Assembly (NCBI GenBank): GCA_964036045.1
Contig: OZ038378.1
Location: 198,772,001-198,836,000 of the forward strand
Direction of reading: 5' to 3'
DNA length: 64,000 nucleotides
DNA from: Eutreptiella sp. 'Long Island Sound 2002'
Lineage: Eukaryota > Protista > Euglenida
Below, in pieces: positions 12,900 through 38,856 of the stretch. Position numbers and translations under genes: made by a program. Position 1 is the first letter of the stretch. Every line of letters starts with the position of its first letter. Below the pieces are notes generated by a model, which did no database searches, had not been told where the DNA came from, and saw only the letters and a program-made list of their open reading frames with translations.

Positions 12900-12904
<5 letters not shown>

Positions 12905-12953: not shown

Positions 12954-12955
<2 letters not shown>

Positions 12956-13749: not shown

Positions 13750-15250
13750 CTCCTCATCTGCACGCTCCCATTCCGTCCGGCTTCAGTGACTTCTTACTGC
13801 GCTGGGGCCTACCTGCCGCATAGTGCGGCAGACCTCCCAGAGGACACACGGGGCACGCAATACTGCGGATTCCACAAGTCTGGGCCAAAGCGGGCAGTGA
13901 GCGAGCTTGTGGTACTCTGGTCCCCCCTGCTTCTCTCCATCCAAGGCCCACATACACCACAACCCAGTGGGTGGGCACCCCAAACTTGGATACTTGCGTC
14001 ACAGCGGGACGCATGATGGCGGGGTTTGATGGGATGTATGCGCTTTCTCAGTTTGAGAGGCTGGCGCCGAACCCTGGATGCTTTGGTACATTTCTACTGC
14101 AGGAACTGGCCACTGCATCCCACAGCCGTCTGTATTGTTTAGGTATCACCCGATTTGCTGATATTTCATTGGCATTTGTTGAATTTGCCTCAGAAGCAAA
14201 GCTGCGGCAGAATCGCTGATTGAGTAAGTGTTACAGTCTTAGGAGACGGTGAGCACTGGTGACTCCTTTGATTCGGTTGGTCTAGCAGACTTTGGAACTG
14301 ATTTCGTGTGCAGAAGAAGTCTTCCTCCACTCCTTCCACCGGGGGGCATGATATTTGATGTGTGTGTGCCATGTGCCGCAGTGCAGACAATCTGTAGAGT
14401 ACCTTCCCAAGTAGTGCTGCGAAATGTAGTGGCGGTGTGGTTTAGGATATTGGCAGCATTGTGCACCATCTGTTTGTTTTGGATACCACTGATTTTAGTC
14501 CTTTCGGCTTCGTTGTCCCAGTTTCGGCAGCTATTGCTACTCAATATGAAGAATGCCGTTCATGCAATGCCCACATGATACAAGCTTTTGGAACCAAAGT
14601 GCCTACTAAGACCTGTATGAGGCCTTGTTACATCCCTTATTGCCCATCGCCATCCTTTTCTTGGCTTGCCCTTGCAGCACTACACCATGGTGTACAGCAT
14701 GCGACCTAACCGGCAGCAGCCACGTGAACGCACGGGGCATGGCCAGGCTACCACTGAGCAAACATGACCTGAGTCAGTTGTGGAGCCTGTTGTTCTGTCG
14801 GCGCCGAAGGCACCCTGCGACGCGACCCCGGGGGAAGCAACGGTGGGACTCAGTGCCCTCAAGCCCATGGCCTATGCTTCTAAATATGCACACACTCACT
14901 CTCTCTCAATTCTGCATCCCTTTCTTGACCATCCCCTTCTTTTGTTTCCCGACGCATTTTGTCATGTCCTTCAACTCTACAAGTCCAAGTCCACCTGCAA
15001 GAGTGGATGGTGCTGTGATGAAGGAGACAGTAGATGCCCATCTTGATTTGGTATCGCAAGTGCCCATTTTACAACCACAACCAGATTGGTCATGCTACCC
15101 CTGGGTGGAGGCTATTGCTTCAACTTGCACACCTCTGTTGGAATTTTGCCCCTGCCACCCCGCTTGCTGCCCATTTGCATTCACTGGTCGTCACACAGCT
15201 GACACAGGTGATCTGCTTTTGATGAGGTAGTCAAATACCAGCTATCTACT
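13750..15250 (-). mobile_element. Possible decayed non-LTR (LINE-like) 3' region
   Basis: The minus strand gives ITAPSTLAGGLGL (14995-14981; post-RT GGLG-like motif) and, about 1.1 kb downstream, ACPVCPLGGLPHY (13855-13844; knuckle-like). Many stops; no RT core seen. Confidence 0.35.
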
Positions 15251-17339
15251 TTGTGGTGGATTTTTGGGCAGTTGACGCTGGATTGCACTGGATTTGAAAA
15301 ATGTGACGCTGGATTGGCTGCTGGATTCGCCCTTCCCCAGACATCAGTTTAAGCTAAGAACGCTCTGTTGCACAAATCTAGCAGCTAGTGTTCTTAGTTC
15401 AATTGGTCTGCTGTCCAATTTTGTTGCCCACCAGGTCTGTTCTCCAATTTTCACTCTCCTCATGAAAGCAATTTGCAAATGTGGTGTGAGGGTTACAGCT
15501 ACAGTGATGGTGACATGTTACTGGGGGCGGCTAGGAGGGGTTGAATGTGGACTACATTCAGTGAGTGCATGCACATCATAGAGATGAGACGTGGTGTCAA
15601 CTGACACTGTGCACTCTGCAGAACGTGAAGAAACCGTTTGCAGACGCAGCCCACGCAGTTCGAGGAGTCTGGATATTGTGCATGTTGCCCATTCGACAAT
15701 GTACATGACCCCTCCACAGTTTATTTTTTCTGGGGTCAGCTGCTGCCCGATGTATGAACCACTGCTCTTGCTTCTGGCTGTATCAGTTGTATCTGTGGGA
15801 TTCTGTGAGATTGCACAGTCACGGCAACGCAAGGCATCGGAGGCAACAAGCAGTAGTTCCCGTAGTACGACACAGGGTACCGACACAGGGTACCGCAGCA
15901 GCAAGCAGTAGTTCCAGTAGTACATCTCAGGGCAGGGCAGCAGCGCCTACTTTGGGCAGTTCGAGTCATATAACAAACCCTCCACTGTCAGCACCAGGGA
16001 TCCCAACACCAACACCAACACGACCAACCAAAAAGCCGAGGAAGCGGACGTTGGCTTTCAAAACCCCATCCCCTTCGCCGAAAAAGAGGTCCAAGGTCAG
16101 TCCCAGTGCCTTCTGATGCTTTGCACTGGGGCCTTTATCTTGCATGCCTTCTCTCACGTGAATGTCCTTTTCCTCTCATAGAATTCCCTTGAATTGACCA
16201 TACTTGCATCCCGTTGCCCTGCTCATCCAACATGACCAGCCTGTATCATATGAACCAGAAGTGCTTTCGAAATTTAACCCACAGCTCCATCTGACTGATG
16301 CATCCTGTTTCCATGCTCGCACATCCTGTCACTGTATGCCTTGATTGCTTTTGAGTCGGGGCATTGGTTACAGCTAGATGCTGTGAATCCTGGTGTTGTC
16401 CATTAATTTTCATTACAGCTGGCATCCGCATACCCATGCAGTTTGTGAAAGCATCCTAATCCATTTGCACTGTTTGACAATACCGTTCACCAAGGGGCTT
16501 TCCTCCTGATTTTCGTTGTGCAGTGTCCCCGCATACCTCTGTGGCTGTGCCCTTGCCTCTCGTTTTTGCCTGACCTGGCTGTGCAACAGCCTTCAATCCC
16601 GCCTGCTGCCTTGGCCAAATTATGATTATTGATGAAGAGCATCACCCTCCATGGAACAATCGAAACAGACAGTTCAGAGGAGGGGTTTTTCTCACAACAA
16701 CTGCCCGGATGCATCAGTATATAAACACGTATATATGCCTATCTACATCCAGTCCATGCATGCACATCATTTGTGTCGAAGATTGATGGCTTGATGGCAA
16801 AGGTGATACAGAGTCCACAGGGGTCTAATGTCTCTCTAGCATGGTCACCCTCTACACCTCTGGCACAATTATGCAGCATCACAATTCTGCATGAATTAGT
16901 CCCCTTCTGTGTCTTTGCCACTAATGCATTTGTGTGATGTCGCGGTTCAGCTTTGCAAAGTGACGTTGTCGTAGTGGTTGTTGCAGAGATGTTGGCTTTG
17001 ACTGCTGCGCACACCTCACAGCAAAACCTCTACAGTATTTGCAGCAAATAGAACGGAATGCAGCGCACCGGACACCAGAGGCGCCAGGAGGAAGTACTGT
17101 CCCATCCAGTGAGGTCTTTGTCAGCCGGATTGCTGTTGGACACCCAGGAGGTAACAGTACATGCAGCCGCATGAATATGTCCGACAAACTGTCAACACGG
17201 AGGGTCAACATGCCAGGCACCCTCGAGCATTTTTGGCAGGAGCACGCACGAGGGTGGAAGGTGCACATGAGCCAGCATTCTCAACTCATCGAGGCGGAGA
17301 TGGAGGTGGTACAAGAGTACAAGAGACGAGGCCAGTTAG

Positions 17340-17580
17340 GACTGGGGGGCGCACTTAGCGCAGTGCGTGCACAGTGCATTTGGGCCTCTTGCCGCACTAG
17401 AAACCAATATTTTGTGGTACTAGGGGAATCCTTGGTGTTTGATAACAGGTATTTGGATGCTTCTTCTGCATAGGGGATTTGCTATGCTTGGATTTTCACC
17501 CAATTTCATCCACTTTCACCTATTTTCACTCACTGTGTCTTCTGCTTTCTAGGTTGATTTCTCCTCCCTAGGCAGCCCTC
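17340..17580. repeat. Interspersed repeat with a same-orientation copy at 63683-63945
   Basis: Both begin GGGGGCGCACTTAGCGCAGTGCG and share TACTAGGGG, GGATTTTCACC and CTAGGTTGATTTCTCC. Confidence 0.88.
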
Positions 17581-18559
17581 AACGTGGGCACTATACAGCA
17601 GCCTCCGTTGATTCGCATCCTGCATAGGATCAATTGTGGGGTTGAAGATGAGCATGCAAACAAGCCTGCACGTGAAGATCAACCATCAGACAAAGAGTAG
17701 CCCAAGGATCAGAGGATGCATGGTGGGCATGGGTTGCGTGCCATTTGCCAGTCGCGCCATGTGACTTGGGCACACAACTGGCTTGTGGAGTGCCCAGCAT
17801 GGGAACGGGAGTGTGGGTGGAGAGCCGGGGACCACGGTCCACATCAAAGGAAACGTGGTATAACCAATCAACCCCAGAGGACACGTAGAAAATGAGCAGG
17901 CTACAAATACTTGAATCCTTGGTTGGGAGCTTGGAACAATCCCTCAAAAGGGAGCTACGGCGACACATGGCACTGCACCAGCATCGCATGATGTGGGGTC
18001 GGACAGCTCCCTGGCCCTCCGAGAGAACGGGACTACGGTGGCACTTCCTTAGTCCCGGCCATGCATGGCGCATTATGGGCATGGAAGGTGAATCCCCAAC
18101 CCCAAAGAAGAACCTTTTGGACCAAGTGGGTTATTGTCCACAAAAGTTTGCCATGGGAAAAGGACCCAACAAAAAAACCCAATAAGACGGACAAGGTGAT
18201 GCACGGATACAAAAGAAAATTCGGGCTTTGTTGCTAGGGGTACCCACTAGAACACGGAAGGCACAACTACTCCGCATGTTGAATCCAATACCGCCAAGAC
18301 CATCAGGTGCTGCAAATGTACGGATGGTGATCTCGGAAGCGGTGGAACCCAGGTGGTGCCTCTTGTTTGCCCCTAAACTGCACCTGTCTATGGGGTGTAG
18401 AGAACTATGAAGGACACACTTCAACTCATAGAGGTAGATGCAAAGTGGATCATTGGGATGAGACATGAAGTGCCCCCCCCCCCCCCCTGCAATCTACCAC
18501 CCCTTGCAATCCCCCCCCACCTCGGAGACCGTCACTACCATGTTTTTCTAGTTAAATAA

Positions 18560-21500
18560 TGTTTAGCAATAAACAATAGTTTAAACACAACAACAGCAGA
18601 CCGGGACATTGTCTGTTTGAGGGGTGGCTAGGGACCTGCATTGGGGAGGGTTTGTGGGACCCCTTCGCTTTGTCATTGTGCAGTTTGATGATTTTAGCCG
18701 CCAATCGGTATTGCAATTGATTGTAGCTGCTTTGTTCGCTCATTAAGGAGTTGGAGCAGTGTGCCCCAAGCTAAGAAGCGCAAAATTGTTTTTGCTGTGG
18801 ATTCCGAAATGCCAGATGCCAATACTGATCAGTATCGTCAATGGCAAGATTGGCGTGACAAAACGGGAGCCACTGATGTGGATGTGTTGCCAATTGATGA
18901 GAGGGGCATTATGGCAGCCTAGTTTCATTCGAATTTGATGTCACATGGGTTGGACCTACAAGGTATCGACCTTTTGTTGGATGGGGCTGCCCCTGAGTTG
19001 CCAGAACATGAAACTCCGCTGTATCTAGCCATGTTTGAGAAGGCCCACTTGTGGTCTGCCTCAGGTCCGGCTTGTATGGACATTGGGGACGAAACTGCGC
19101 TGTAGGCCCTCCCGGTTCTGGATTGGACGACCATGATTGTGCTGAGCCGCTTGGGGATACGTTGTCCAAGCCCTCGACCGCCCCGGGTCCTGTGCCGGCT
19201 GTTCAAGTTCCCGGTCCTCACCGTCGTGGAGGTTTTACGCAAATTGGGTCCCAGATGCTGTATACCGCCTAAAGCACATGGTGCACCTACGATGCCTCGG
19301 GCCCACCCCCGTACCCCTGCGTGAAGTGCTCCCAGATGCATTGGTCCTGGCAAAGATGTAGTGGTGGTGACCGCAGGGCCTCGACCAATAATGCTCCTAC
19401 TCAATCCCAACAACCCCCCTCACAGCCCCAACAGCCCCAACTGCCCTTGCCGTCCCAGCCGCCCCAGCTGCCCCCGCGTCCGGGGGGGGGGGGGGGAGCA
19501 ATGTGGGTGACGTCCCGGAGCAAGGGCCCTTTGACACGGGCGTCCTCGCAGGGCCCTGTGAACAGGCCGACTCCTCGGATCAAGTTGGCTTCTTCGGGAC
19601 GGCCGTCCTTGACGCCAAATGTGCTGACCCCGTGGACTGTGACCAAGCCTTAGCACTTGGGCGCTAGGCGCCGGGATCACTTACCACGTGGATCCGTATG
19701 CTGCGGGCACTCAACAAAACGGCCACCGCCTATCCGGAGTTGTCCAGGGCTGAGGCCCTTGCACAACACGTTCGACTGCTCGCAGCCGCATGTCGCCGGT
19801 CCATCACGCTCCCTGGCGTGCCCAGTGCAGTCCGCATGTGTGAAAAAATCGGGATCTTCCCCACTACTTTCCAACCCCTCCATTGGGCAATGGCGGCAGG
19901 GGCAGACAGAGTTACCCCAGAAATGTTGGCGCACATGGCAGCCAAAGTGGTGTGCTTGGGGGCTCTTCGGGGAGAACATAGTCTAAAAGTAGCGCGCAGT
20001 GCAAAGACTCCCCCTTTATCACTCCAAACGTGCAGGGCGCTAGGTAACAACTTCCCTTGGGGCATGGGGAGAAGCGTGGCGAAGCTCTATTGCTAGATCC
20101 CCACAAGTCCAAGCCCGGTCCCAGTATTTGCCGGCAGCCATTAGTGCACGGGCATTGCAGGCCTCCCTAAGGCAATTGCTCTATGCATCTGGATATCATG
20201 ATGCCGGGTGGCACTGCTGGCGCCGAATGGGTGCCGCCCTCCTCGCTTGGGCAGGGGCCGCCCTCTGGGTTATTGCGAGGTGGGGATGCTGGCACAGCGA
20301 ACACCAGGCCCAATACTACTCATCCCCGCCCCTGCATTGGAGTGTATCCTTCCCCATCTTGCTTCCCTGGCTGCTGCGAGAACACAAAGTTGAACACAGG
20401 TCTACGGCCGCCTTCCAAATCTGGCGTGAAAACCTTGTATCAGTGGTCCAACACCCCCGCCAGACACTAGAGGTCATCGTCTTGGACGGGAGTGAGTCCA
20501 TTGAAGATTGGTCACCCACTAGCCCCCTGCCTTACCCCAGGGTACTAGGGCTTGCTTGCACATCTCGTGGAGTATGGGCAGTCAAATCGGTTTGCCGACG
20601 ATCAACCCACTGTGACTCTGTCTGGGTCCCTGAAAAATAACACAGGCTGCCCCAGGAAAATCCGGGTACCAATCAGGCCACGTTGCCGCCTACGACGACC
20701 CCTGAATTGGTCTCCAAAGCCACTACCGTGTCACAGCACTACTCAAGCACCAGAGCCCATGCAGCCCGCCGTTCGCGAGGCCCTACAGGTGCTCACCCGT
20801 CTGGAGAAGTGTGTGACCTGCGGTTTCGACTGGGGTGATCACTTTTCTGAAGCTGCTCAGCGATTCACCCACCTGTGGAGGCTGCCATATGGCACCATCC
20901 TTCCCCTCCTACATTCCTACATGTGTGGTGGTCAAAGACCCTGAAATGGGTTTGTGACAGGCCTGATGATGTTTCTGCTGTTAGGGAATGTGAGCTTGGC
21001 TTAGCTGAGGCAGTCCTGCATCATCTTGCTATGTTAGGACCACCGGATTCCGCCAGTTCCCCAGAGTTGCGCCAGCCGGTTCCGCCACTCAGATGCTGAT
21101 AGAAGTGGCGCAACGGGGTATTGGACCTAGGTCTATCTTTGTGCCCCGAGACCTGTGGTCGGTGTGGTCGGACCCACAGTTTCAATGGGCTGGCGTTCAT
21201 GCACCTTCGCAGCCTCCTTCGCCCCGTCCTAAGGCTGCCGCCATGTTAAAGGCCTTGTTTGCGGAGGGATTGTTAGCCCGCACCTGTGACCCTGCCAATG
21301 CCTAGGTCTTTGTTGAACAGAAACCTGCCGAAAAGGCGGCACTCATGGTAAATATGGTTAAGTTGAATCACAGTTGTTCCTATAAGGCGTGCCTGTTTCG
21401 CCTTCCTACTCTTGAAGGCCTCTGCCACACCCTCCGCTCTTTTTTTGGCGAGGCATGGGCCTTTAGGTTGGATTTGCAGAATTGTTATTGGTCCATCCAT

Positions 21501-22550
21501 TTGCCGCCACCGCTTGTGAATACAATTCACGTTGCTGCTGGTGTTGATCACTATGCTATCATTAGGGTCCCATTTGGATGGCACCAGGCCCTTGGCCTGG
21601 TGCAGCATCGGATTGCGCGGGTTCTAGACAGCATAGATAGTGAGTCTACTGTCATTGTACAATATTTGGATGACTTGCTTTTTGTTGGTCGGCATAAAGT
21701 TACAATGGGGGCGGTGGCCCACCGTGCTGCTGCTACGCTTGAAAGGGAAGGGTATCTTATCAGTCCCAAGAGCCAGTTAGACCCTGTACAGAATGTTTCT
21801 TGGATGGGCAAGCAAATTTGTTTGCCTGCACCACGAATTGCCCCTTCAATTCCCTTTGTGGCGGACGTAGTTGCCAAGTGGTTGAAGCTGGCGGTCCGCC
21901 CTTACAATTACAAAAATCTACGCCGCCTTTCAGGCAAACTGGTTTGGCTTGGTAGACCTAGGTCGTTGGCGGGATCTTTTTTGGCAGGACCACATGCATG
22001 GCTTAACTCAGGCCCATATACTTCAAGGAAAGTGCCGTTTGCTATGGTGAGGGCGCTTCTGGAGGCCTTGGCCTATTCTTTTCGTGGTTGGGAACGTTCC
22101 CCTGCTGCCTCCTCTCCCCCTGTTCGGGGTTTTGCTGATGCACCTCCCGATCCCCGTCATCTATGCTACTTTGTTGTTGGGTTGTGGTCTAAGTTCGGCA
22201 CGACCATTCGCCGTTGTTGTGGCCCTAGATGAATTTCATTTTGTTTCCTGCCCCCATTTGCAGTTAGTGTTAGATAACATGGGCACATTATCTCAATTGC
22301 TTTGGGGTCGGGCGAAAACACACCTCTCCCCACGGCACCGTATTTTGCGCAGGTTGTGCCATCGGTTGCGTTGGAGCGGAGCACTGCTCAGTTTGTGTGG
22401 AGTCAGCATTTAACGCAACTGACCCGGTTAGCAGGACATTTGATTTTGCTTCAGGTACAGAAGTAGTGATACAAGTAGGAGCGCGTGCTTGCTTCTATGC
22501 GGCGTCGGCACACACCTGATGGGGTCATGTGGCGGATAAGACGGGGGGGG
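18560..22550 (+). mobile_element. Decayed tyrosine-recombinase retrotransposon, gag-YR-RT-RNaseH order (VIPER/TATE-like)
   Basis: Broken gag-like frames with CVKCSQMHWSWQRC (19318-19359). YR motifs GALRGE, HCWRRMG (20212) and RWGCWHS...YY (20314). RT DLQNCYWSI, VPFGW, YLDD (21663) and SPKS...WMGKQ. RNase H FAD, LDN and NxxDPVSR (~22410-22432). Several stops and frameshifts; ends approximate. Confidence 0.88.
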
Positions 22551-25092
22551 GGGGGCAAATGGCGATTTTAAACATCTATTGCACTAGTTTGTGTTGCCCA
22601 TCTGCTTTACACATGGCCTTGCATTGCTTTCCCATTACTTCAAATCAACTTGTGTGCATTTTGTGATGTTCTCTCTCCAAAGGTGTTGTATGGGTGTACT
22701 GTGTTGCTATTTCGGACCCAAGATGTTTACTTCCGGTGACTGTGTACAATACCACTCGTGCACACTTGATGCACATGTGTCGGCCACTGTCGTGGGCCCT
22801 TCACCAAATGGGCCACAGTTTTGCCACATTCGGTACATACGCCTTGGTGGGGTCACTCAGGTGGATCATGAGAGCGCCCAACTCTCAAGGCTAGAGGCTA
22901 TGGCGGTACCACAATGTGCCTTGAAATACCCTCACAATCACCCCACCCCACCCCACCCCAGGAGACCGTCACTTGGCGACCCCCCCCCCCCCCTCGGCCG
23001 CGAGACCGTCACACGCTAACTTGGGAGATTGCAAGGGGGGCGGCGGGTAGGAATTGCCATGGTAGATGTTGTGCAATTGCTATGGCTCGTGGAACGGTGG
23101 TGGCTGTACCACTCTCAGCAAATGTATCGTGCGAGCCGCACAGATTGTTTAATTACCCACTAGGTGCTAACCCCATGTCTCTACCGGATTTAGTCAACCA
23201 TATTCCCGACTCGATCCCACCCTAGCTTGTTAAGCTAGTGGACTGCTTAGCACTGGGGGTAGGAACTATACTGAGATCGCCCGTCCCCAGCTAGGCACAA
23301 AAGGTGTCACATTGTCGTCTCTCTTGGGCCACCGCTACCCTGCACTTGTAGAGGTTAGACAACCTTTTCTCTGCTTCACGTTATCCCTTAGATTTTGGAA
23401 ACCCCTATTACGTAAGGTTCCAACCATGTAATGAGAACGTGAACCCATGAAGCAAACAACTGTTTGGCCCATGGCTGAACAGTTGTTTCCCTAGGAGACC
23501 CTCGAAGCATGACACTGTGTGATGCCCTTTGGGGTTTCTAACCTATCAACTTTTTGCATGTCATCAGGTCCGATTTACACTACCGGTAGCCCGTTCATAC
23601 GCCACGGGGTGACAGCTGTATTGTCTTCAAATCGAGCCGAGCCGCAGCTTGGTGAAGCAAATGGCGGGTGATCGGGGCCCACACGGAGGCTTGGAGTTGG
23701 CACCGTGTGCGCGTTTGTCGCCCGAAGCGTGGGCCCGTAAGTGAGTCACGTCCAGCACACATATTATGGGACATACTGCACAGGGCCCTGCCACTCTGGT
23801 AACACAGTCATTGGGTGGTTTGTGTTTCTTGGCGGCCCTCCCGCATGATCGCACAGGTCATCACTGCTCTGGTCATGCGGCCCTACGGCCCTGCACGTTG
23901 TTGCCGTCCCTTGAAACGGGACCGCGGTCCACGGCTGCTGGTGGCTTGAAGGGGACTTGAGCTGAAGTCAAATGAAAGCGCGTTATGCCACACACATGTG
24001 CCTCAAACATGGGCCGGGACCAGAGAAAGTGGGGCTTCAGACGAGGGCTGCGGGACCAGTGGGGACCCGGGGGTGGCGTAACGCATCTCAGTCTTTAATG
24101 CAGCCTTCCCATCCGGCATCGTCAACTCAACCAGCCCCGAGGCCCACTGCCCTGTGTTTTGCGGGTCCTCAATGAGTTGCGCAATAGGCTGCACAGAGGC
24201 CCCCTGTTTTCCTCACAGGAGCAACCACGGCGAACGAAAACCAGCATGACGTGCGCACCGAAAACAGAAAGAAAACAGTTTCACTGTCGCCTGTGGGCAA
24301 TGTCACGACGCCGAGTAAGCCCTATGAAGTGCCCGATGCATGGCTTACATAGATGCCCAATTGCCCGCTGCAAGCACGTTGTCCCGGTAAGAAGGATGCC
24401 TAATTGCCTGTAGCAAACACACGGTTGGCGTGACGCCCCCCCCCCCCCCCCCAAAGAACACTTCAATGCCCCGAGCTACTCACTATTTTTCGTCGTGCGA
24501 GACGACATGTTACAGCAATGGCTGTTACAAACTGTATTAGCTAGAAGTTGAAATGCAAATTGGTTGACTGCAATACACCTTCCCCATGAACGCATCCTTG
24601 CGTCGCCCCCCCCCCCCCCGCGCAAGTACACCGTTATTCTAACACAGCAACCCTGTGTTTCTGCACTTTTTGGGATTTTTTGGAATCATTGTTTTTGCGG
24701 TTCCAAGTATACGGAAATGTGGGTTGTAGGTTTGTGCAGGCTGTAGGAGTGGTTAAGTTGGGTGTCACAGTGTGGGTGTAGCTGGAATTGCATGTGCTCT
24801 TGTGTTGTGGTGTGTATGCTGGCCTGTTGGGCACCATTCTGTAGTCATGAGCAATTTCATTTTTACTGCCAGGGTACCCGTCACATACTAGCGGTACACG
24901 AATGATGTGTTTGTGCCTGCTCAAGTTTTGGGTCACACAGGGTGAGCAGTGTATTCACGGTTCGTCTGAGCGCAATGGTGATGAACAAGAGCATGATGCC
25001 CCCTTGGATCATGTCATTCGATCACCACCACCCTCAAATTGGGAACCCTCACTGCCTGCCGCGCCTGAGCGTGGCCAGTCCCCCGTGTGCAG

Positions 25093-25194
25093 GTCCCCCA
25101 ACGCACTCCTGTCTAGCACTCACGGCCACTCTGCCAATGGGTTGGGAGTTGTGCATAACAAACGATGACATTCCCTTCTATGTGGACCATGAGG
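25093..25194 (+). other. Orphan exon-like segment encoding the first part of a WW domain
   Basis: TLPMGWELCITNDDIPFYVDH fits LPxGWE...YVDH. Bounded by gtgtgcag| and G|GTTATG (phase 1-1). No partner exons identified. Confidence 0.4.
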
Positions 25195-26884
25195 GTTATG
25201 CTGTGTATTGTCATGTTCGGAGGGGGTGGGCGATGTCAAAGTGTGTTCCATGGTATGTGTTGCGCGCAAACATGCCCTTGTGTAAACATTGCAGCTCAGT
25301 GTTTCTGCACTTTTACTGAGCCTGGCTTGTGTTCGCGCAAGGGGGGGGGTAAGGTACTCATACGAGAACGATTCTGTATCAATGGTGACCATTGGTCTGG
25401 CTTAGAGCAAGATTTCAATCTGTGGTTCAAGTGCACACTGAAAAGCTTGGCTTCCGTGTCTCTTGTCTTGAGGAAATTCAATCGTGTTTCAACAAAAGGT
25501 GCTTCGATACACCTTTTGTAGCAATTCAACAACACAAGTTGCGAGCCCCCAGCCCCCCAGAAAATGGCACTACATCCTGTTTATTGATAAACCCAAGTGT
25601 TAACGTCAGAAAGCATTGGAGTTCTTCGCCCCCCATGCTTTGCTATGAGGGGCGGCATTACAAACCCGCAAGCGATTGCCAGTGGGTAGCTGGGTATTCA
25701 ATGCACAAGACAAAATTGGGAAAGATTGCTGCATGTGTGGAACGATGGCGCACAGCCAATGGGTGGCATATGCATCAAACCCCTAGGGTGCACAGCGATC
25801 CAGCATCTTCAACATGAGATGACTCATGCACAGGACCGTTGGCTTGCAGTGCAATGCAAGAGCATTTTTTTCGGGCGCAGGTGCGCAGAGCTGTAGTATT
25901 CTGTGGTTCAGATTGTGGTGACAGTGGTTCTCCAGAAAAGCCAAGAAGTCTCAGCACATGTGCTGTGGCTGGCAATCTTCATGCAGCGCACACAGTGCAT
26001 AGTTTTGTTGTTGGCAAATATGTGAACCCTAGTTTGGCCCTTTTGTACAGTTTTTTTTTTGTGTAAAACGAGCTTGATTCTATTGATGGCATGTATTACA
26101 TTGGATTTTGTGTGAAAACGGGTATAGAAAGGGTGTTGGGTCACAGTTGAGGGGACCGGCAGACACAGTATTCACACAGCTGCTTTGATTCGTCCTTGCT
26201 TCGTGAGCTGGCAAAAATTGATGTGGCGGGTACACGGGTTGAGTTACCTCTACTGCTGTTTGGGTAACTCCCCCTTTCCCCTTTGAGCGTATTGTTGGAT
26301 TGACCAGCCACCAGTGCCAAAACATTGCCATGCTGCCATGCATGTACCAGTGCAAACAACTAGTCTGGAGCGAGGTGGCAGCAGTATGCAGACAGCAGGC
26401 AGTTTGCAATTGCAAAGCAGCGTCACACAAGGATCCACTAGGAGTACTACTACTCGTCGATATTCTGCATGTGTTGTTTCTACACTTGGATTTAAGAACG
26501 AATGTGTAGACATTGAGTCCCCAGAGGCGGCCGGTTCGGACGGGCATCACCTGCATAAAGCCTGTGGCTCTGGTTGCAGCAGCTGCACATACATTAGGCA
26601 CTTGCGCCCACGAGTGCCTGTTTGTTCATAGTGATCAACATGTGCAGTGCTGCAGTACAAAACAAAAGCATAATCGCAGAGAAATGCGGTCCGTCAGAAC
26701 TGACCGCCATTAAGCCCCATAACCGTCACTTGTAGCACAGCTGAAGGCTTTGACCAGGGTTTTGCGGTGGACGCGGGCTGGCGGTCAAACGGCCGTAGCT
26801 GATTGTCGACCGACGCCGCTTGGCCCTGAGCGGACGGCCATTGTTGGTCTGCCAGTGCTCTATTGCCTCCGGGCCGAGACCGGC

Positions 26885-30189: not shown

Positions 30190-30565
30190 GGAAGTGACCT
30201 ATGCATTCCACAGGAGAGACTCGTGCATTGCACAGAGGAGGCTTGTGCGTTCCATAGAAAAGGCTTAGGCATTCCACGGAGCAGGCGTATGCATCCCACA
30301 GAGACGACTTGTGCATTTTGTGGAGAAGACTTGTGCAGTCCATGGAGAACAATCGTGCGTTCAATGTAGAAGAACTGTGTATTCCATGGAGAAGTTTTGT
30401 GCATTGGACCATTTGTATTCCATACAGCAGACTTGTGCTTTCCATGGAGGCAACTTGTCCATTCAATAGGACAAGACTTGTGCATTCCAATGGCGAAGAC
30501 TTGCGCATTCCATAGAGAAAGCTTGTGCATTCCATGGGGAAGATATGTGAACTGCACAGAAGAGA
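30190..30565. repeat. Degenerate ~22-23-bp minisatellite filling SDR intron 2
   Basis: GACTTGTGCATTCCATGGAGAA-like units, about 15 copies. Confidence 0.9.
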
Positions 30566-30626
30566 CGGCCTACGCAAGGTCCGTGGCGGCAAACAACGCC
30601 CCTGTACCCTCTTTGTCCGCCTGCAG

Positions 30627-31020
30627 ACGGCCGATCTAACGGGCAAGACCGTGTTGCTGACTGGCTCCCGCATCAAAATCGGGTACTACATCGCCCTGTC
30701 GCTGCTCCGCTCCGGGGCCACGCTGATTGCCACGTCCCGGTTCGTGGTGGACGCCGCCGCACGCTTCAAGAAGGAGGAGGACTACGGGCAGTGGGCCCCC
30801 CGGCTGCACCTCTACCGCCTGGACCTGCGGAACTTGGCCCTGGTCACCGCCTTCTGTGACCACGTCTGTGCGAAGTATGGGAGGCTCTTCGCGATCGTCA
30901 ACAACGCGGCGCAGACTGTGCGCCGCCCGCCGGCATACTACGACCCGCTGCTGCGCCGCGAGCACCTGGGCACCCCCGAGCCTCTCATGGCCCCGGATTG
31001 GACGCCCAACGGAGCCCCAG
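30627..31020 (+). CDS. Atypical SDR, exon 3 (Rossmann fold start)
   Basis: Acceptor ctgcag|ACG. DLTGKTVLLTGSRIKIG, LDLRNL and IVNNAAQTVRRP SDR motifs. Donor CAG|GTGTGG at 31021, phase 1. Confidence 0.93.
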
Positions 31021-32199
31021 GTGTGGTGATGTCGCAGTCTCACCCATGCAAAATGCTCCGCAGTGGCTTTGGACAGGCGATGTAAACATGTGATTCCCGA
31101 AACCCCAAACCAGTGCCTACATCCGGCAGCACCAAACGGCACACTTACACAGCCGTCATGGCGACCCCCCTCAATGCACTGCTCCCGCTTACAGCCCCCA
31201 GGGTTGCCCCGACGATGACTGTCAAGCAGCGTCCCCAGTAGCCACCCTTGCTTTACGAGCCCATGCCCAAAGGGTACAGCACGTGGAATATTGTCACGAG
31301 GATACGATCATTGCTGAACCTGCGGTCATTTGGTGCATTGGCATGCCCGACCCTCGGACAAGCACCACGACCAGTGTGTTCAGGGGAGCTCAGAGCAGCC
31401 GATACTGAAAAGCATCGGGGTGCCACAAAAGGGGTGAACCCCCACTGCCCCCTCTTTTTCGATTGCCTGTTTGTTGCACCAATTAGCACGGGGTCATGCC
31501 ACGGTGTCTTTGGAATAATTAACCCCCCCCCCCAGACCAAAGTGACTTGGGAAATCGTGTTGGGCCATTTTTGGTACACAAACTTTGGGGTTCGTGACCC
31601 CCCCCCCCCCCCCGCTCAATAGACGCCCTGGGTCATGCTATGTAGCACTCCCCCTCCCCCTTTCCCCTCCCCAGTGCCACCCCTCTTTCAGGGCGTCCTA
31701 AGGCGGACAGAGGTACCCACCCCACGGGCAGGCTCAGCCCCGCGGATGAGGCGAAATATACCCCGGCACCCAAGCGGCTTACCACCAGGGGACAGGCGCC
31801 CGATCCACGACGACCACCATGGGCCCGTCCCCGCGCCGCGCGGCAGCCACAACGGTTGCCCAGGCGTTTCCAAAACAACACCACAACATGCGGCAACACG
31901 CACCAGAAGTGGCACACTCCTGGAGGGCGGTCCCAAACCCCGCTGAAGGGAGCACCGTGAGCTTACACGGTGGGTAAGTAGTCGCTTGGGTAGCTGGGTG
32001 TCCAGTGCTGAGCCTGCATGCCACTGGAAGGAGGGCGTCCTCCGCCCAGCAACCTGACCCTGCAATGGTGCAACACGCCGCCAATGGGCCAGTGCATGTA
32101 TCCCGACCAACCACACGCGGCACTACGCGACGCCGCGACAGCGCACGGCAGAAAGGAGTGGTGTGCGCGCCGAGCTAAACCGCGAGCCCCGCATCACAC

Positions 32200-32860
32200 A
32201 CGCAGTGTGTAGCAGCAGCAGCAGCAGCAGCAGCAGGGTGCAGCGCCCCCATAGCCCCTTGATTGGTAACGGGGCGGGGGTAGGCTGCAGTGTGCAGCAG
32301 CACGAGTGTAGCAGCACTAAGACAGCTGCAGCAACTGCGACAGGTGTGCAGCAGCCGAAATGCTGCTGCTCACCAGCTGCAGGTGCAACTGCAGCACCAG
32401 AATGCAGCACCCCCACAGCCCCTCGATTGGTAACGGGGCCGGGGTGCTGCTGCAGTGTCCGCTGGTTACGGACTGCGACAGGGCTGATGCAGGAACTGCA
32501 GCACCAACTGCAGTGTGACTGCACCAGGCTGCAGACGACTGCAGACGACTGCAGCATGCTGCCGATGACTACCGCTGAGCGCAACCGGCTGCAGGTGAAT
32601 GGCTGTGGCCCAAGGGCAGTGGGCAGAGGAGGGCATCCTCCGTAGCCCCACCAGTGGCGAGGTAACCAGCAGGAGGGCGTTCTCCAAGCGGACCCGCCGC
32701 GAGGCACCCAGCGCGGGGAGGCACCAGGCCCTTGGCGTCAGGGAGCCCGGTTGCCCCACGCGCGGAAGCCAGGCCCAGAGCCACGACCTGGCCACGCAGC
32801 CACGCAGCAGCACTGAGACGGCTGAGCCCCAATAGTCCCTAGATTGGTAATGGGGCTGGG
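32200..32860. repeat. CAG/TGCAG-rich low-complexity tract with three copies of a ~40-bp motif
   Basis: CCCCCATAGCCCCTTGATTGGTAACGGGGC-like motif at ~32245, ~32408 and ~32827, amid GCA repeats. Confidence 0.8.
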
Positions 32861-33177
32861 GCACACCGCGTGGTGGCACATGCCCACCGCAAGGTGGCAC
32901 CACACAACGCAACACAGCGCGGAGCACAACGAGCGCCCGCGGGAGCACGGGGAGCGCACGGAACACACGGCGGCCGCACACACCACACATCACTCCGGGG
33001 GGGCGAAGGGTAACCCCCCTTGGGTGTACGCTGGCGGCGGCTCTCAACCGGCAAGGCCTGAGGCACACCTCAGGTATGCCAATAGCGTACGGCCCCTCAG
33101 AACGAGAACCAGAATCCCCCTTCCCCCTGCCTGTGCCCCCCCCCCACCCTCTGATCCTGTGTCCCCGATCGTTTCAG

Positions 33178-33624
33178 GGGAGCTGCACTATCTGTCTCCT
33201 GTGTTCAAGCTGGAGAGTGACCAGGCCCCCGCAAGGCCCCCGGACACAGACGGGGGCGGTAGCCCCGCCGCCCCCGCGGCCGCGGACTCAGACCGCCCGG
33301 AGGAGGTGCACAGTGCTCAGGCGGACCCACATGGGCCAACGGAACTCCCCGGGGGCGGGGCTGGAGGGGCCGGCCCCGCCGCCCTGCGTGCGGCCGATGC
33401 CGCGGGGTCGGGGGGCTGTGCCCTGAGCCGCATCGCCGGGTCGGAGGAGGCGTGGTACGATATGTACGACACGCTGCAGACGCGGCTGGACAAGCGGCCG
33501 GAGAACTCGTGGACGGCGAAGCTCGCGGACGTTCGGGGGGAGGAGGCCGCGGAGGTGCACGCCATCAATGCCCTGGCGCCGTTCATCCTGAACTCCCGCC
33601 TCAAGCCTCTGCTCGTGGCGCAAG
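33178..33624 (+). CDS. Atypical SDR, exon 4
   Basis: Acceptor gtttcag|GG (phase 1). Low-complexity insert followed by NSWTAKLADV...EVHAINALAPFILNSRLKPLL. Donor AAG|GTCCTC at 33625, phase 1. Confidence 0.9.
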
Positions 33625-34559
33625 GTCCTCCCCTGCCGCGCCCCTGTCGTGCACCCGCGACGCGCTCGCACGTGCACTGCGCTGAAACCGGGCCCGGACC
33701 TGTGGCCCCGGCCCATGGGGCCTCCGCAGTCCATCACCGTGTCACGAACGTACCCCCCGTGTCCAACGAACACTCCTGTTCGGATCGTATTTTGGGGTGA
33801 CCTGATTAATGAGGTAGTGAGGGACCTAATTAGGTACAGGGCTTCAGAACCGAGGTTTCAGGGTAAAGGAGTGGGGACTCCAACAAGGGCTTCTACTCTG
33901 AAAAGTGCCGATTGAAAGCCTCCATGGCATTGTGCTTTGAATGGGCTGGGTATCTTGTGCGTCGGGATGTGTTACAGCGTTTCGCAATATTGTCGCGCGC
34001 ACCGAACGGTGTGTCCAACGAACACTCCTGTTCGAACCGCATTTTTTCAGGACCTGATTGGTTGTTGGGGGGGGGGGGGGTACAATGGGCCGGTGCTGTG
34101 CGGGCGCTTCCCCGTGACTACGTGCCGGTCATGCGGTGTCCTTCTCTGCGCCTGGGACGCGTAGATGACGCGCCTGCCAGCGCGTACCCGGCCCCACTGT
34201 GCACCCACCACTGCGCTTGCGATGCGCCCACGCCAGCCCTTCTTCGCGGACACTTTGCACCAGGGCTGTCCTTAAAAAGCCAGATTTGTTTTTTTTTGCC
34301 AATTACACCCCTTAAGGACAGCCCGCAGGGACCACGAACCGCCAGCCGCCAACGCCAACCGCCACCAACCGCCAAGCACCAAGCGCCGCCAACCGCCGTC
34401 AACCGCCAACCGCCACCGATCTCCAACCGCCAACCGCCGAGAAGGGTCCATGACCATGAAGCAGACAACGTCCCCGTTCATGTTGGCGTTACGAAAGTCT
34501 TCCTTTTTCATCCTTCTGGACAGGCCTGCTCTGCACGTGCCCGCGGGTTCTGTTTGCAG

Positions 34560-34909
34560 GGGCCGACGAGCGGAAGTACATAATCAACGTCTCTGCGATG
34601 GAGGGGCAGTTTTACCGCTACAAGAACACGACGCACCCGCACACCAACATGGCGAAGGCGGCGCTGAACATGCTGACGCGGACCTCCGCGGCGGACTATG
34701 CGCAGAACAAGATCTACATGAACAGTGTGGACACGGGCTGGATCACCGACGAGAGTCCGCTGCCGAAGCAGAACCGCAAAATTGCAAAGGACCAGCTGTT
34801 CACTCCGTTGGACGAGCAGGACGCGGCGGCGCGCGTGCTGGACCTGATCTACACCCAGAGTGAGGTCTTTGGCAGGTTTTGGAAGGATTTCCAGATTATT
34901 CCATGGTAA
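34560..34909 (+). CDS. Atypical SDR, exon 5 (last)
   Basis: Acceptor tttgcag|GG. KYIINVSAMEGQFYRYKNTTHPHTNMAKAALNMLTRTSA...MNSVDTGWITDE...RFWKDFQIIPW, then TAA. The five exons sum to 1755 nt, an uninterrupted 584-aa frame. Confidence 0.95.
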
Positions 34910-35042
34910 ATGTGGCACCGTGTGTGTGTGTGTGCTTCTGTGTGTGTGTGTATGTGTGTGTTTTCCTGCTTGCAGGGGTGGACACGACAAGTGGACCGCC
35001 CCACCCGTTGGTGCCTTCTGACCGTGTACCTGCTGTACTACA

Positions 35043-35118
35043 GAAAGGCGCCTAGCCGCATGCTCTTCCACTCCATCTTCTACTTTCTTACGGCCTGACG
35101 AGATTCGTTAGCGACCAG
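35043..35118 (+). ncRNA. Hammerhead ribozyme core, type II permutation, unit 1 (acceptor-containing form)
   Basis: GAAA 35043-46; palindrome AGGCGCCT 35046-53; CUA cleavage triplet (after 35054); stem I GCCG 35055-58/CGGC 35091-94; CTGACGA-G 35095-35102. Preceded by CTGAC and a CAG acceptor (AG 35042-43). Confidence 0.7.
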
Positions 35119-35174
35119 TGCAGTGCTCTGTCTGTCTGCCTGTTCGTCTCGCTTCAATCGTGTGTGTGTGTGTG

Positions 35175-35199
35175 TTTCCGAGTGTCTAATTGTTTTTCG
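35175..35199 (+). other. Genomic relic of the euglenid spliced-leader exon
   Basis: TTTCCGAGTGTCTAATTGTTTTTCG versus the Euglena SL as I recall it (ACTTTCTGAGTGTCTATTTTTTTTCG): about 3 differences over the 3' 24-25 nt. Joined directly to AAAGGCGCC, where sibling copies have CAG|AAAGGCGCC. Confidence 0.85.
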
Positions 35200-35263
35200 A
35201 AAGGCGCCTCGCTGCAATGACAACCATGTTTTCTATGGGGGCCCGACGAGTTGTTTTGACCAG
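35199..35263 (+). ncRNA. Hammerhead core, unit 2 (SL-joined form, core mutated)
   Basis: C-GAAA 35198-35202, AGGCGCCT, CUC (after 35210), short stem GCT/GGC, inner stem CCAT/ATGG. The core reads CCGACGA (35243-49) instead of CTGACGA. Confidence 0.65.
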
Positions 35264-35878
35264 CCCGTCTGCGATCTTCAGTGGGTCGGTGTTCTTGGTC
35301 TCGTTCACTACAGTAGTGTTGTGTAGTGTGTGTCAGGCCTTTGCTTTGTGGCTGGTTGATACTATACCAAGGGGGGGGGGAGGGTCTGAGGATGGTGGGT
35401 GGGTTTTTGTCTGGGTTTTCCCCGATTTTGGGGAAAATGCAGGTACCCCCCCTAGGCGGGGGGGGTGTCCGCTTTTTTGGGTGGGTGGGTGGGTCGCTGA
35501 GCTTGGTAGACCTCCAAAGTCGTTCATGGGCCGAGGCACATTGTGCCACATGGGGATGCTGCCACTTTGTTCAGACCTGTTTTGCTTTACACTTTTTCAC
35601 TTCAGTCTGTACATGATCAGGGACTGTCAGTGACCAGTGGAAGTAGCACAGGTCAACCAAAAGAAGGGTGTGAGTACAAACCCTGTTGCGCACATTTTCA
35701 GCACCTGCTATGGAGTGGTCAACCTGAATTTGTTTCATCCGAAATTGCTCTGTGACCCCCCCCTCAGGGTATCCGGCAGGCGGGCGGGTGGGTCTGAGAG
35801 TGGGTGTGGGTGGGTCAGCCAACATCCTGGGAGGGCCAATTTAACCCCCCCCCCACACTATCACTAAGCAAAGGCCTG

Positions 35879-35915
<37 letters not shown>

Positions 35916-36634
35916 CTCCAGGAATTCTATGGGTCTGGGGAGGGCAGGAGGGGGTGTTACTGCACTTATGCACGCCAGCACTCCGTCGCACTCCGTCCAA
36001 CTGCAACGTACCGCAGGACGGCTGGGGCTGCTCTGCAGCTCCTGAGGGGGTTCCTCCATCCGGTTTTCTTGCGTTGTTCTTGTCTCGCAGTTCTCAACAT
36101 GTGTGTGTGTGTGTGTGTGTGTGTGCGTGCGTGAACAAAACAAGGTACGGTTAAGGCAGTTTACTGTATGAGTTACTCGATGCCTGTGAAGAAGTGCATC
36201 ATTCTTGCTAAAGTTCAAAGCTGGCTAAAGGAAAAGGCGGCATGGCGGGGAGGTGAGTACAGTTCGTGGGTAGGGCCACAGAATGCAGCGCTGCACTCAT
36301 ACTCCCCTGTCTGGAATGATGATTTTGCGGCGCTGGAGGTACTGCGTGGGGCCTGTTGTACACAGGCCGACTGTGTGCGTGTATCCCCCCGGTAACGGGT
36401 GGTATGAGTATTACTTGCTGATTTGAACCATTAGATTTAGTTGGTTGGGCTGGGAGAAGTACAGGGACCTGAGGTGAGGGCTCCAACACATTCCCGCAGC
36501 CAGATGCGGCGCTTAAATGTCATTTCACTCTGTCCTTCACAGGCCCTTGGCTTAGCGCTCAGCGCGGCTGCCGAGGGCTGAAGACGGTAGAGATCGGGTG
36601 CAGGATGTGCCTCTTCCTCTCACCCTGTACTGCA

Positions 36635-36710
36635 GAAAGGCGCCTAGTCGCTGATGGTCATGTCTTTTGTTTGACTGTTTGCGGCCTGACGAGAATCTAC
36701 TTACGACCAG
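36635..36710 (+). ncRNA. Hammerhead core, type II, unit 3 (acceptor-containing form)
   Basis: Pyrimidine tract + CAG (AG 36634-35); GAAA 36635-38; AGGCGCCT; CUA (after 36646); stem I GTCGC 36647-51/GCGGC 36681-85, inner GTCA/TGAC; CTGACGA-G 36686-93. Confidence 0.75.
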
Positions 36711-36999
36711 TGCCTGTGCCTGTCCTGTTCTTGCTGGTTCTGGGCTTTGGTCGCTTTGCGTCATCCACGTGTGTGTGCGTGACTGGTCGGTATCACAAGC
36801 CTCGGTGGGCCTGAAGCAGGGCAGGGGAGGGGCAGGGCCTGACTTTCCCAATTTACGCATGTGACGAGCAGAAACGTTTAATTGTTGCTCTGTCCCGTGC
36901 GGGCCTCTGGTCCAGCGCAGCTGCCTGGGGCTATCCTCGAGTTCGAGGCCATGGTGGTGGGTCAGGATGCGTGCCTCTCTGCCCTCCGCCTGCTCTGCA

Positions 37000-37076
37000 G
37001 AAAGGCGCCTATTGGCGGCGAACATGCTTTGTCTTGTTTGACGACCCAACTGACGAGGATTCTGACACTCGGAAAC
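37000..37076 (+). ncRNA. Hammerhead core, type II, unit 4 (acceptor form with perfect anti-SL arm)
   Basis: Pyrimidine tract + CAG (AG 36999-37000); GAAA 37000-03; AGGCGCCT; CUA (after 37011); stem I TTGG 37012-15/CCAA 37046-49 (fully covaried relative to units 1 and 3), inner CGAACA/TGTTTG; CTGACGA-G 37050-57; GACACTCGGAAAC 37064-76 is the reverse complement of 35174-35186. Confidence 0.8.
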
Positions 37077-37333
37077 CGCGTTCTGCCCGTTTCTCTTGCA
37101 ATGTTGTCTGTGTATGTGTATGTGTATGTGTGTGGGTGGGTGGGTGGATGGGTGCGTGTGCGCGTACACGTGCAGTCCCCACTGGTGACAGACAAAGGGC
37201 AGGCAAATGCGGGCCGTCCGAGTGCGATGCAGGTTGCGATGGCTGATGCGGTCCCTGAGGAGCCATGATCGCTAATGGGCACACTGTTATATATGATCCA
37301 CGACAATGAACGGAGTCGGAGGATAGGTCAGTG

Positions 37334-37400: not shown

Positions 37401-38856
37401 AGTGTGTGTGCCTGTGCGGGTGCGGGTGCAGGTGCGGGTGCGTGTGCAGTCGCAGACAGTGGTGGCTCGGCGGCACAGCCGGCCCACCACCCATTTCCCT
37501 GGCGATTGTAAAGTTTTGCATAACAATTGTTTTATCGGCCAAGAATGCCGTTGCCAGCCCCGCAGCTGCTGCCTCTCGTTGCCCAGTTGGACAACTGCAC
37601 GTGCCTGTTGATGTGGAAGTGTTTGCTCGCCTTATTGTCATACAGTTGACGGAGACAGCTTTGAGTCACAGCAGGATTCAAGGGCATCCCAATGATCCGT
37701 CCATCGAAACAACACCCAAAAAAACCCACAAAAAATGCAACGGTTTTTTGACTCCAGCACAACCGCAATAAAAAGGCATTTCGCAAAAGAAGACCCCATG
37801 GCGACCAGAGTTGGTTTTGGATAATTGCTAAAGAATTTGCGTTCAACACGCAAAGTAGTATCCTGCAAATCTCTGATATCCACAAGGTACGCAGCGCATA
37901 CATCAGATCCTGATCCTTCACACAGCTACAGTCCGTCCATGCAGCGCCAACGAGGGTCAGAATCAATCATTTCAGCTGCGGTGTGGTATTGGCGCGCGGC
38001 TGTAATGCAGCAGCCCAGCCGTACACGGCTACCATGGGCATCGACGTGTGCGCTGACGGTTCCCCAACTGATTTCTCACCCCTTCTTCGGAAGCTTCCCT
38101 TTGTCCTGAACCCCCTGTCCATGTCCAGGGGGGCGGTGGAACGTTGAGCGAATGTCATAGAAGTGCTGCCTGTAGATAACAGGCCATGAAAGTGCATCGT
38201 AGCAGAAAGAAGAGGAGAGGCATCATGAGGATGTTTTTGAGGAGCCGCAGCCTAGTGTCACCTACTCACCCCCGGCGACGGGGGCTGATGAACATGGGGC
38301 ACCCACCAAGTAGCGGCAAAGACCTCCCACCTGTGCTTTCTTGTCATCCTCCGGTCGTTTCAGCTGTCCCTGCTCGGAAGCAGTACTCCTGTGTGCCCGC
38401 TGGCGTTACAAGGTGGCTGCTGCTGGCATTCGGTGACGGGGTGATGTGCTGCCCCCTGGTTTCCCTCAGGGTTGAGGAGGCCCCCTGTTGCTGATGGAGC
38501 CTTTGCACTGACGTTCATGCCCTAAGCACAGCCCCGAGAAGTGCACATGATCAGGCAATGACGGGCATGGGGAAAGTGGTTGGGCTTTTACCCCAGATCT
38601 AACGGCCAGTTTCCGGGGGTTTCCGCTCCGTTTGACTTCACCATGACTGTGGATGTCAGCTGCCAGAGCACGGTCATCTTTACACTGAGGCCCCAGTGCA
38701 CCCCTCTCCTCTGCCCATGGAATCTGGAGTTCACACGCATCTGTCTCCAGACAGTAGTTACCAGAAGGGGTTATCTAATATACCCAGGGCCTTTTGGACC
38801 GGTTTGAACCTGTGTGCGAATGTGTGTGTATATTTGAGTGAGAGTGTGTGTGTGTA

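Follow-up and report, generated by a model that had tools for sequence, protein, structure and literature searches.

Type II hammerhead ribozymes (Rfam Hammerhead_II) are mostly bacterial and metagenomic, and in the known examples both strands of stem II lie on one transcript. A discontinuous hammerhead was reportedly described by Martick et al. in 2008 from the 3′ UTRs of mammalian CLEC2 genes; its two halves are said to sit in one pre-mRNA, hundreds of nucleotides apart, with activity conditional on the RNA context.

Penelope-like elements (PLEs) and retrozymes carry dimeric minimal hammerheads (Cervera and de la Pena 2014, cited in PMC8557442; bioRxiv 10.64898/2026.07.22.740005). These ribozymes are of type I with a closed stem II hairpin, have a very short palindromic stem III that implies a dimer, and occur in high-copy non-autonomous derivatives. 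PLEs of Chlamys are biased towards insertion at (CA)n, and the EN-minus elements Athena and Coprina bear reverse-complement telomeric repeats beside the hammerhead, which anneal to telomeric DNA overhangs and prime reverse transcription; surveys of PLEs with an N-terminal endonuclease reported canonical hammerheads to be lacking (PMC8557442). In trypanosomatids, an HDV-like ribozyme (L1TcRz/Pr77) occupies the 5′ end of the L1Tc and NARTc retrotransposons; its presumed role is to release their RNA from polycistronic co-transcripts (PMC3185411, PMC4035085). Our literature search found no paper that combines hammerhead ribozymes, spliced leaders (SL) and Euglena, and nothing on Euglena PLEs.

The window studied here, i.e. 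the whole 64-kb stretch of DNA that was analysed (64,000 nucleotides), contains four units that match GAAAGGCGCC-N(30-60)-CYGACGAG, all on the forward strand, at 35043, 35199, 36635 and 37000; none is expected by chance. The units and the tails that follow them are:

35043–35102, forward strand: unit 1 (A1 type), stem I GCCG/CGGC
35159–35174, forward strand: (GT)n-like tail after unit 1
35199–35250, forward strand: unit 2, a retrocopy headed by the leader, with C17 and the core CCGACGAG, in which U4 is replaced by C
36635–36693, forward strand: unit 3 (A type), stem I GUCGC/GCGGC
36769–36782, forward strand: (GT)n-like tail after unit 3
37000–37057, forward strand: unit 4 hammerhead with G12 AAA, palindromic stem III AGGCGCCU, A17, stem I UUGG/CCAA, CUGACGA and G10.1
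37109–37137, forward strand: (GT)n-like tail after unit 4

The strands follow in the order G12-A13-A14, A15.1-GGCGCC-U16.1, A17, the cut, the stem I hairpin, C3UGACGA9 and G10.1. In unit 4 the cut is predicted between 37011 and 37012, and the loop of stem I has 33 nt. As read from the letters, this is the order of a permuted (type II) hammerhead, namely GAAA, stem III, cleavage site, stem I and CUGANGA, with stem II open. The type I topology is absent, as the family has no hairpin between CUGACGA and a GAAA.

The units resemble the PLE and retrozyme hammerheads in their retroelement-borne core, their very short palindromic stem III and their high copy number, and they share with Chlamys PLEs a microsatellite bias, here for (GT)n. 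They differ in their type II order and open stem II; moreover, the element lacks the 3′ strand of stem II, and its G12/A13 boundary is a trans-splice junction. Unlike the known type II ribozymes, the family has no Rfam match. With the CLEC2 hammerhead it would share two separated segments and a dependence on RNA context, but here the missing strand would come from a separate molecule, the SL RNA, attached by trans-splicing. With L1Tc and NARTc the likeness is that of a euglenozoan retroelement with a putatively self-cleaving 5′ module, which in trypanosomatids is shared by non-autonomous partners; the trypanosomatid ribozyme belongs to another class, however, cuts at its own 5′ edge, needs no leader and sits on transcripts described as unspliced. 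Finally, a short complement of an abundant cellular sequence stands directly beside the hammerhead as in Athena and Coprina, but it matches an RNA leader, lies in the middle of the element and accompanies insertion at (GT)n.

The window is nuclear DNA of Euglena, and its units belong to a high-copy non-autonomous, SINE-like retroelement family of roughly 150–300 nt that inserts at (GT)n. Further copies were obtained through the translations of units 4 and 3, which matched spurious ORFs (P0002–P0009) of a public Euglena assembly (ENA ERZ25074135); eight 20-kb loci (L121–L128) were taken from the contigs of these ORFs. A pattern scan of the window and the eight loci tabulated 23 copies (19 in the loci), to which a scan for the loop motif added one A copy with a truncated stem III block (L126:10057), giving 24 in total. 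The most frequent branch in this sample is A, with 8 copies, and unit 3 has seven near-identical copies in the fetched loci. A pattern scan of metagenomes returned at least 120 loci, which we rejected as chance bacterial matches; those listed had neither (GT)n nor similarity to the family.

Read depth was evaluated with contigs of three runs from the same species over positions 34400–37320. In run X1, the summed word depth was 7,000–26,000 over the units versus about 34 for the neighbouring single-copy exon. The family comprises hundreds of copies at an identity of at least 90%. The depth of the B type is about 500–700 times that of single-copy sequence, with matching pieces that run through the arm described below and then diverge, and contig matches end at (GT)n. 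Copies are often clustered, and nearly all are followed by a tail rich in pyrimidines and GT and then by (GT)n. Upstream of them lies either an element segment with the acceptor or (GT)n with a leader relic; target-site duplications are unreadable inside (GT)n.

Several features of the surroundings were recorded. Tight clusters of units of subfamilies A, B1, B2, C and D occur at L128:8500–10200 and L125:5600–10550, where the units sit in or beside each other's (GT)n tails, which suggests repeated insertion into microsatellites made or extended by earlier arrivals. A few kilobases from units in L127 (11277–12101) and L123 (2660–3373) are ORFs with RNase_H and PIF1 Pfam matches that may be other mobile elements. 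In the window, exons of a short-chain dehydrogenase/reductase (SDR)-like gene extend over 30525–34909 on the same strand as the units. The first (GT)n and unit 1 follow directly after its stop at about 34909, which would allow the gene and the units to share a transcript. A long inverted repeat lies at 62587–62876; its tip on the minus strand (around 62700–62770) reads CUGAUGAG...GAAACCGGUA/C and looks by eye like a type I hammerhead with a palindromic stem III, while an Rfam E-value scan of the repeat gave only a plant miRNA-precursor-like hairpin match and no hammerhead.

In the alignment of the four units, the invariant columns are essentially the two blocks GAAAGGCGCCU and CUGACGAG. Units 1, 3 and 4 have both CUGACGA and GAAA, as do most of the 23 tabulated copies, and point mutations of the core are found in individual copies (unit 2 CCGACGAG, L121 CUGCCGAG, L123 CUGACAAG). 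The arrangement GAAA-GGCGCC-U-A was found in 21 of the 23; position 17 is C in unit 2 and G in a decayed copy. In 18 of 23, GGCGCC shows no change. Stem III (AGGCGCCU) is an 8-nt palindrome that as a hairpin would leave a loop of 2 nt. It cannot close in this way, so only a duplex between molecules or between units is feasible. The Rfam scan found no hammerhead at the gathering threshold or at E values up to 10, as expected if one strand is missing from the DNA.

For stem I, the bases after position 17 were compared with those before C3. They form 3–6 consecutive in-register pairs in 22 of 23 copies, and the number of consecutive pairs is 99 in register versus 8, 18 and 11 with the register shifted. 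The count was anchored on the conserved blocks and not on the MAFFT alignment, because MAFFT gaps misplace stem I partners. Pairs 1–4 each occur as at least 2 Watson-Crick types, and double compensatory changes are seen across six or more subfamilies:

Subfamily A, stem I: GUCGC/GCGGC
Subfamily A1, stem I: GCCG/CGGC
Subfamilies B, B1 and B2, stem I: UUGG/CCAA
Subfamily C, stem I: GUGC/GCAC
Subfamily D, stem I: GCGCAG/CUGUGC
Subfamily E, stem I: GCCA/UGGC

The covariation is good evidence that the fold, and not just the sequence, is maintained in master copies. It agrees with the first-pass annotation of this DNA, which had doubted that the cores are just decayed relics: the conserved blocks are the core and stem III, and the changes in stem I are compensatory.

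Upstream of the core, two features bear on how the units are processed:

35175–35199, forward strand: SL relic at the head of unit 2, with (GT)n in front of it, leader nt 3 as its first base and C at leader position 7
36984–37000, forward strand: 3′ (trans-)splice acceptor of unit 4, a pyrimidine tract and CTGCAG, conserved as CTGYACTRCAG

Each unit's acceptor reads CAG followed directly by AAAGGCGCC, and in the unspliced RNA the G at 37000 is G12. Units 1, 3 and 4 are preceded by the pyrimidine tract and CTGYACTRCAG; unit 2 has the leader relic instead. This relic, TTTCCGAGTGTCTAATTGTTTTTCG, occurs once in the window and directly abuts AAAGGCGCC, joined exactly after the acceptor AG. The leader is fused exactly at the CAG/AAAGG boundary in three independent retrocopies: unit 2, L127:10056, which is headed by a canonical leader, and L126:7903, which is headed by a decayed one. 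These fusions place the trans-splice junction between G12 and A13 and demonstrate use of the acceptor. The three leader-headed copies among the 23 tabulated indicate that spliced RNA of the family is sometimes retro-copied. Elsewhere in the window, at 9691–9707, TTAATTGTTTTTTTTCG resembles the 3′ part of the relic (CTAATTGTTTTTCG); it lies in an AT-rich stretch and is probably a chance likeness.

Downstream of the core, unit 4 carries a stretch complementary to the leader:

37057–37063, forward strand: G10.1 and the spacer GATTCT; in a forced-register fold its GGA can pair with UUC at the leader 3′ end
37064–37076, forward strand: anti-leader arm of unit 4 (B subfamily), pairing with SL nt 3–14

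Here CUGACGAG ends with G10.1 at 37057, and the arm starts 7 nt after G10.1. The arm, GACACTCGGAAAC, occurs exactly twice in the 64-kb window, at 37064–37076 on the forward strand and as its reverse complement at 35174–35186. The exact match reported in the first-pass annotation is thus borne out by a window-wide search. The G at 35174 is part of the preceding (GT)n, and the last C of the arm matches only this base adjoining the relic; the real complementarity to the leader is 12 nt (SL nt 3–14). It is perfect against the relic and amounts to 12 bp with one central G·U against the canonical leader, taken as the published E. gracilis sequence ACTTTCTGAGTGTCTATTTTTTTTCG (PMC6242988). In a simulation that permitted at most one G·U, a fraction of 2.5e-5 of random 30-nt arms showed at least 12 contiguous pairs with leader nt 1–16. 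A chance origin of the B arm match is excluded, even allowing for about 9 subfamilies. We also considered the arm as an antisense leader relic or a product of 5′ inversion and rejected this, as only leader nt 3–14 are matched and the flanks are sense hammerhead.

Two other pairings were noted around the arm. The B spacer and arm, UUCUGA-CAC-UCGGAA (37059–37073), can fold on themselves into a hairpin of -6.8 kcal/mol; the spacer UUCUGA equals leader nt 4–9 in sense and might act as a leader mimic in cis, to be displaced by the real leader. An inverted pair at 37058–37071 and 37951–37964 did not exceed chance level.

Across the family, the 30 nt from G10.1 were scored for duplex energy with the leader against random genomic 30-mers. 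In B (unit 4 of the window, L121 and L122, all with an identical arm at 37064–37076 or its counterpart) the energy with the canonical leader is -18.4 kcal/mol, and for unit 4 it is -20.6 with the relic (p about 0.002). Four B1 copies, with GGCACTCGGAAC-like arms, reach -14.6 to -17.5 kcal/mol (p 0.003–0.016). With the canonical leader, C (L126, GCACTCAGG) gives -13.1 kcal/mol (p 0.04), and C′ and B2 about -10 kcal/mol (p 0.17–0.18). The arms of A (8 copies, including unit 3), A1 (unit 1), unit 2, D, E and C2 give -3 to -7.5 kcal/mol, a level of leader pairing that random DNA also attains (p 0.5–0.97). The match to leader nt 3–14 is 11–12 bp in 7 of 7 B/B1 copies and a weaker 8–9 bp in the C, C′ and B2 copies. 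Only two base substitutions occur in the B/B1 arms, A to G opposite U and C to U opposite G, and both keep the pairing.

The arms of all subfamilies fall in the same columns of the family alignment and form a graded series: GACACTCGGAAA, GGCACTCGGAA, GCACTCAAGG, GCACTCAGG, ACACCCAGG, GCAAACAGG, GCCAGAG and GACCAG. At its lower end are the blocks of units 1–3, whose positions are as first annotated:

35113–35118, forward strand: GACCAG block of unit 1, homologous to the anti-leader block but not complementary to the leader
35258–35263, forward strand: GACCAG block of unit 2, aligned under the anti-leader block, leader pairing at background
36705–36710, forward strand: GACCAG block of unit 3, aligned under the anti-leader block, leader pairing at background

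GACCAG had been interpreted as GAC(ACT)CAG minus 3 nt. As homology this holds, since the intermediates GCACTCAGG, ACACCCAGG, GCAAACAGG and GCCAGAG align with it. As pairing with the present-day leader it fails, because the GACCAG arms of units 1–3 pair with both the relic and the canonical leader at background level, in free and in forced register. The block looks like a decayed homologue of the anti-leader block and not like a working arm. The broader proposal that the element encodes an SL-recognition sequence is partly supported in the same manner: it is right for one abundant branch, B/B1, in which 7 of 7 copies keep the arm, and wrong as a family rule, as copies of the A, A1, D, E and unit-2 branches lack SL complementarity at this position (p 0.5–0.97). 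Among the B copies, which are about 90% identical overall, the arm is conserved no more than the neighbouring sequence, and the same is true of the arm against its flanks between B and C. Selection on the arm is therefore not demonstrated.

The A-type arm CGACCAG (36704 in the window; A copies of L123–L128) can pair with UGGUCG about 35 nt downstream (36748–36753 in unit 3). As read from the sequence, a local hairpin downstream of the core would thereby take the place of pairing with the leader.

Leader position 7 also varies among the three relics that head units:

35179 in the window, about 7883 in L126 and about 10036 in L127: position 7 of the leader relics heading units

This base is C (TTTCC...) in two of the three, and the third is canonical (TTTCT...); opposite position 7, all seven B/B1 arms carry G, as against A in the arms of C and B2. 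There may be a C7 leader variant (TTTCCGAG), which, if real, would make the B helix fully Watson-Crick. A literature search for this variant found nothing.

When unit 4 is joined to the leader and the pair G10.1:C11.1 is forced, the predicted stem II consists of 3 bp GGA/UUC, an internal loop with 4 nt on the arm side and 8–9 U-rich nt on the leader side, and a 12-bp helix. This reproduces in silico the fold that had been drawn from the sequence at first. The forced-register energy is -16.7 kcal/mol when the relic is attached and -15.4 kcal/mol for the canonical leader, values reached by only 0.3–0.5% of random genomic 30-mers, and among the four units of the window only unit 4 stands out. In the minimum-energy, unconstrained fold of the leader and unit 4, the 12-bp helix closes a three-way junction. 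Across the family, stem II with the leader forms in silico in B/B1, forms marginally in C and does not form in A, A1, D, E and unit 2.

In the unspliced RNA, the A of the AG acceptor occupies position 11.1, and there is no G10.1-C11.1 pair. The search for a cis stem II partner of the arm in the upstream outron/leader region returned background levels for all units. As position 11.1 is A and the strand after CUGACGA has no pairing partner upstream, the unspliced RNA would be incomplete. The leader ends in CG, so C11.1 would be created by trans-splicing.

From the observed anatomy, the covariation of stem I, the use of the acceptor, the retention of the arm throughout the branch and the non-random complementarity to the leader, we infer how the parts might work together; formation of stem II, cleavage and the purpose of both are predictions. 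The reading that we favour, to which we give a probability of about 0.45, is that in the B/B1 branch the leader provides the strand that stem II lacks and that the hammerhead is assembled on leader-spliced RNA. It follows from the arm, which begins 7 nt after G10.1 in the right orientation, from the junction between G12 and A13, and from the CG at the end of the leader.

The 5′ module would then be a trans-splice acceptor fused to a circularly permuted hammerhead with an open stem II. Trans-splicing would swap the upstream RNA for the leader, whose last two bases would become C11.1 and G12. The B/B1 arm GACACUCGGAAA would pair with leader nt 3–14 and clamp stem II (GGA/UUC, the U-rich internal loop and the 12-bp helix), so that only leader-spliced RNA, or transcripts of retrocopies headed by the leader, would yield the assembled ribozyme. 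Before splicing, the cis leader mimic (UUCUGA on UCGGAA) may hold the arm until the real leader displaces it. Two units or two RNAs would pair through stem III (AGGCGCCU), as in dimeric hammerheads, and the cut, 11 nt after the junction, would remove the capped leader. This self-removal may give the retroelement a defined uncapped 5′ end or may destroy mis-spliced junk mRNA. That the hammerhead exists only as a product of trans-splicing, with an element-encoded arm that captures the leader's stem II strand and with leader addition that triggers removal of the capped leader, is possible and a shade more tentative.

Some features of the copies fit leader assembly weakly. Long-form copies, derived from unspliced RNA, keep the whole hammerhead, and the leader-headed copies inspected belong to types whose arms are poor or whose cores are mutated. 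Contigs that start at 37010, directly after (GT)n and a T, number 3–4 in the three DNA runs. Such (GT)n-preceded starts are 2 nt upstream of the predicted cut, again a weak fit; among the loose ends listed, equivalent starts near the cut were absent for units 1 and 3.

Other observations speak against leader assembly. The helix with the canonical leader contains a G·U at its centre, Rfam finds no hammerhead, and the arm is no better conserved than its surroundings. The A, A1, D, E and unit-2 types were amplified and kept their core with neither leader pairing nor a detectable cis stem II. Leader pairing is thus not needed for spread, and conservation of the core may have another cause. None of the 24 copies in the window and the fetched loci starts at the predicted cleavage site. 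A B unit that is neither spliced nor cut occurs in one RNA contig. The matches listed, which are contig-level data dominated by paralogues, include no RNA joined to the leader. There also seems to be at least one B-type genomic copy headed by the leader, with 35187 joined to 37001, and some spliced B RNAs would thus escape cutting.

The anti-leader stretch may be a historical accident that arose once in an ancestral master, by chance or as a patch copied from leader-containing cDNA, and then hitch-hiked and decayed neutrally with no function today. The graded series of arms in the same alignment columns would be its natural outcome; A-type copies thrive without an arm, the arm is conserved only as well as its flanks, and the relics and the arm match both end at leader nt 3, as expected from a reverse-transcribed leader. 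We nevertheless regard such an accident as somewhat unlikely, given the probability of a 12-bp match per arm (about 2.5e-5) and the good preservation of the arm in one of the most abundant branches. Furthermore, only the 5′ half of the leader is matched and the orientation is that of the hammerhead sense strand, which no simple product of retroposition or 5′ inversion predicts. Alternatively, the complementarity of B/B1 (and weakly of C) may be real and selected for a purpose other than ribozyme assembly. The arm might tether the SL RNA or its RNP near the acceptor 64 nt upstream and so favour trans-splicing out of host co-transcripts, or it might sequester the capped leader and block translation or export. 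Such roles would suit a non-random complementarity in an element that depends on a used acceptor, and the equally good conservation of the core in armless branches suggests that core and arm are functionally separable. A tether, however, needs no such geometry as an arm placed exactly at the site of the stem II 5′ strand in the right orientation, next to a leader whose last bases supply C11.1 and G12. Before splicing, moreover, the 5′ half of the leader is expected to be engaged in a stem of the SL RNA itself, which counts against tethering. A purpose of this kind seems unlikely to us.

It is also conceivable that the units are not ribozymes at all, and that the GAAAGGCGCC and CUGACGAG blocks and the hairpin between them form a module recognized by a protein or reverse transcriptase, or a splicing signal, with a coincidental likeness to the hammerhead. 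The lack of an Rfam match, a stem III that cannot form a hairpin, the lack of stem II in most branches and the failure to find cleavage-derived copy ends in the window and loci all agree with this. Against it, the units have 11 of 11 core nucleotides, A15.1-U16.1 and a non-G17, and no positions are better conserved than these; the covariation of stem I is in the right register, and a palindromic stem III is familiar from dimeric hammerheads of retroelements (Cervera and de la Pena 2014, cited in PMC8557442). We therefore consider a coincidental likeness very improbable.

Even if the arm is non-functional, the family presents a covariation-supported hammerhead whose G12/A13 boundary is a used trans-splice site. 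If the B arm works, ribozyme activity would be gated by SL trans-splicing. Such control would be a novel form of conditional self-cleavage in RNA and would connect the mRNA processing of euglenozoans with the biology of their retroelements in a new way; permuted, dimer-type hammerheads would also be extended to a SINE-like family of a protist. Should the hammerhead indeed exist only as a trans-splicing product, it would be the first natural ribozyme built by the spliceosome from two separately transcribed RNAs.
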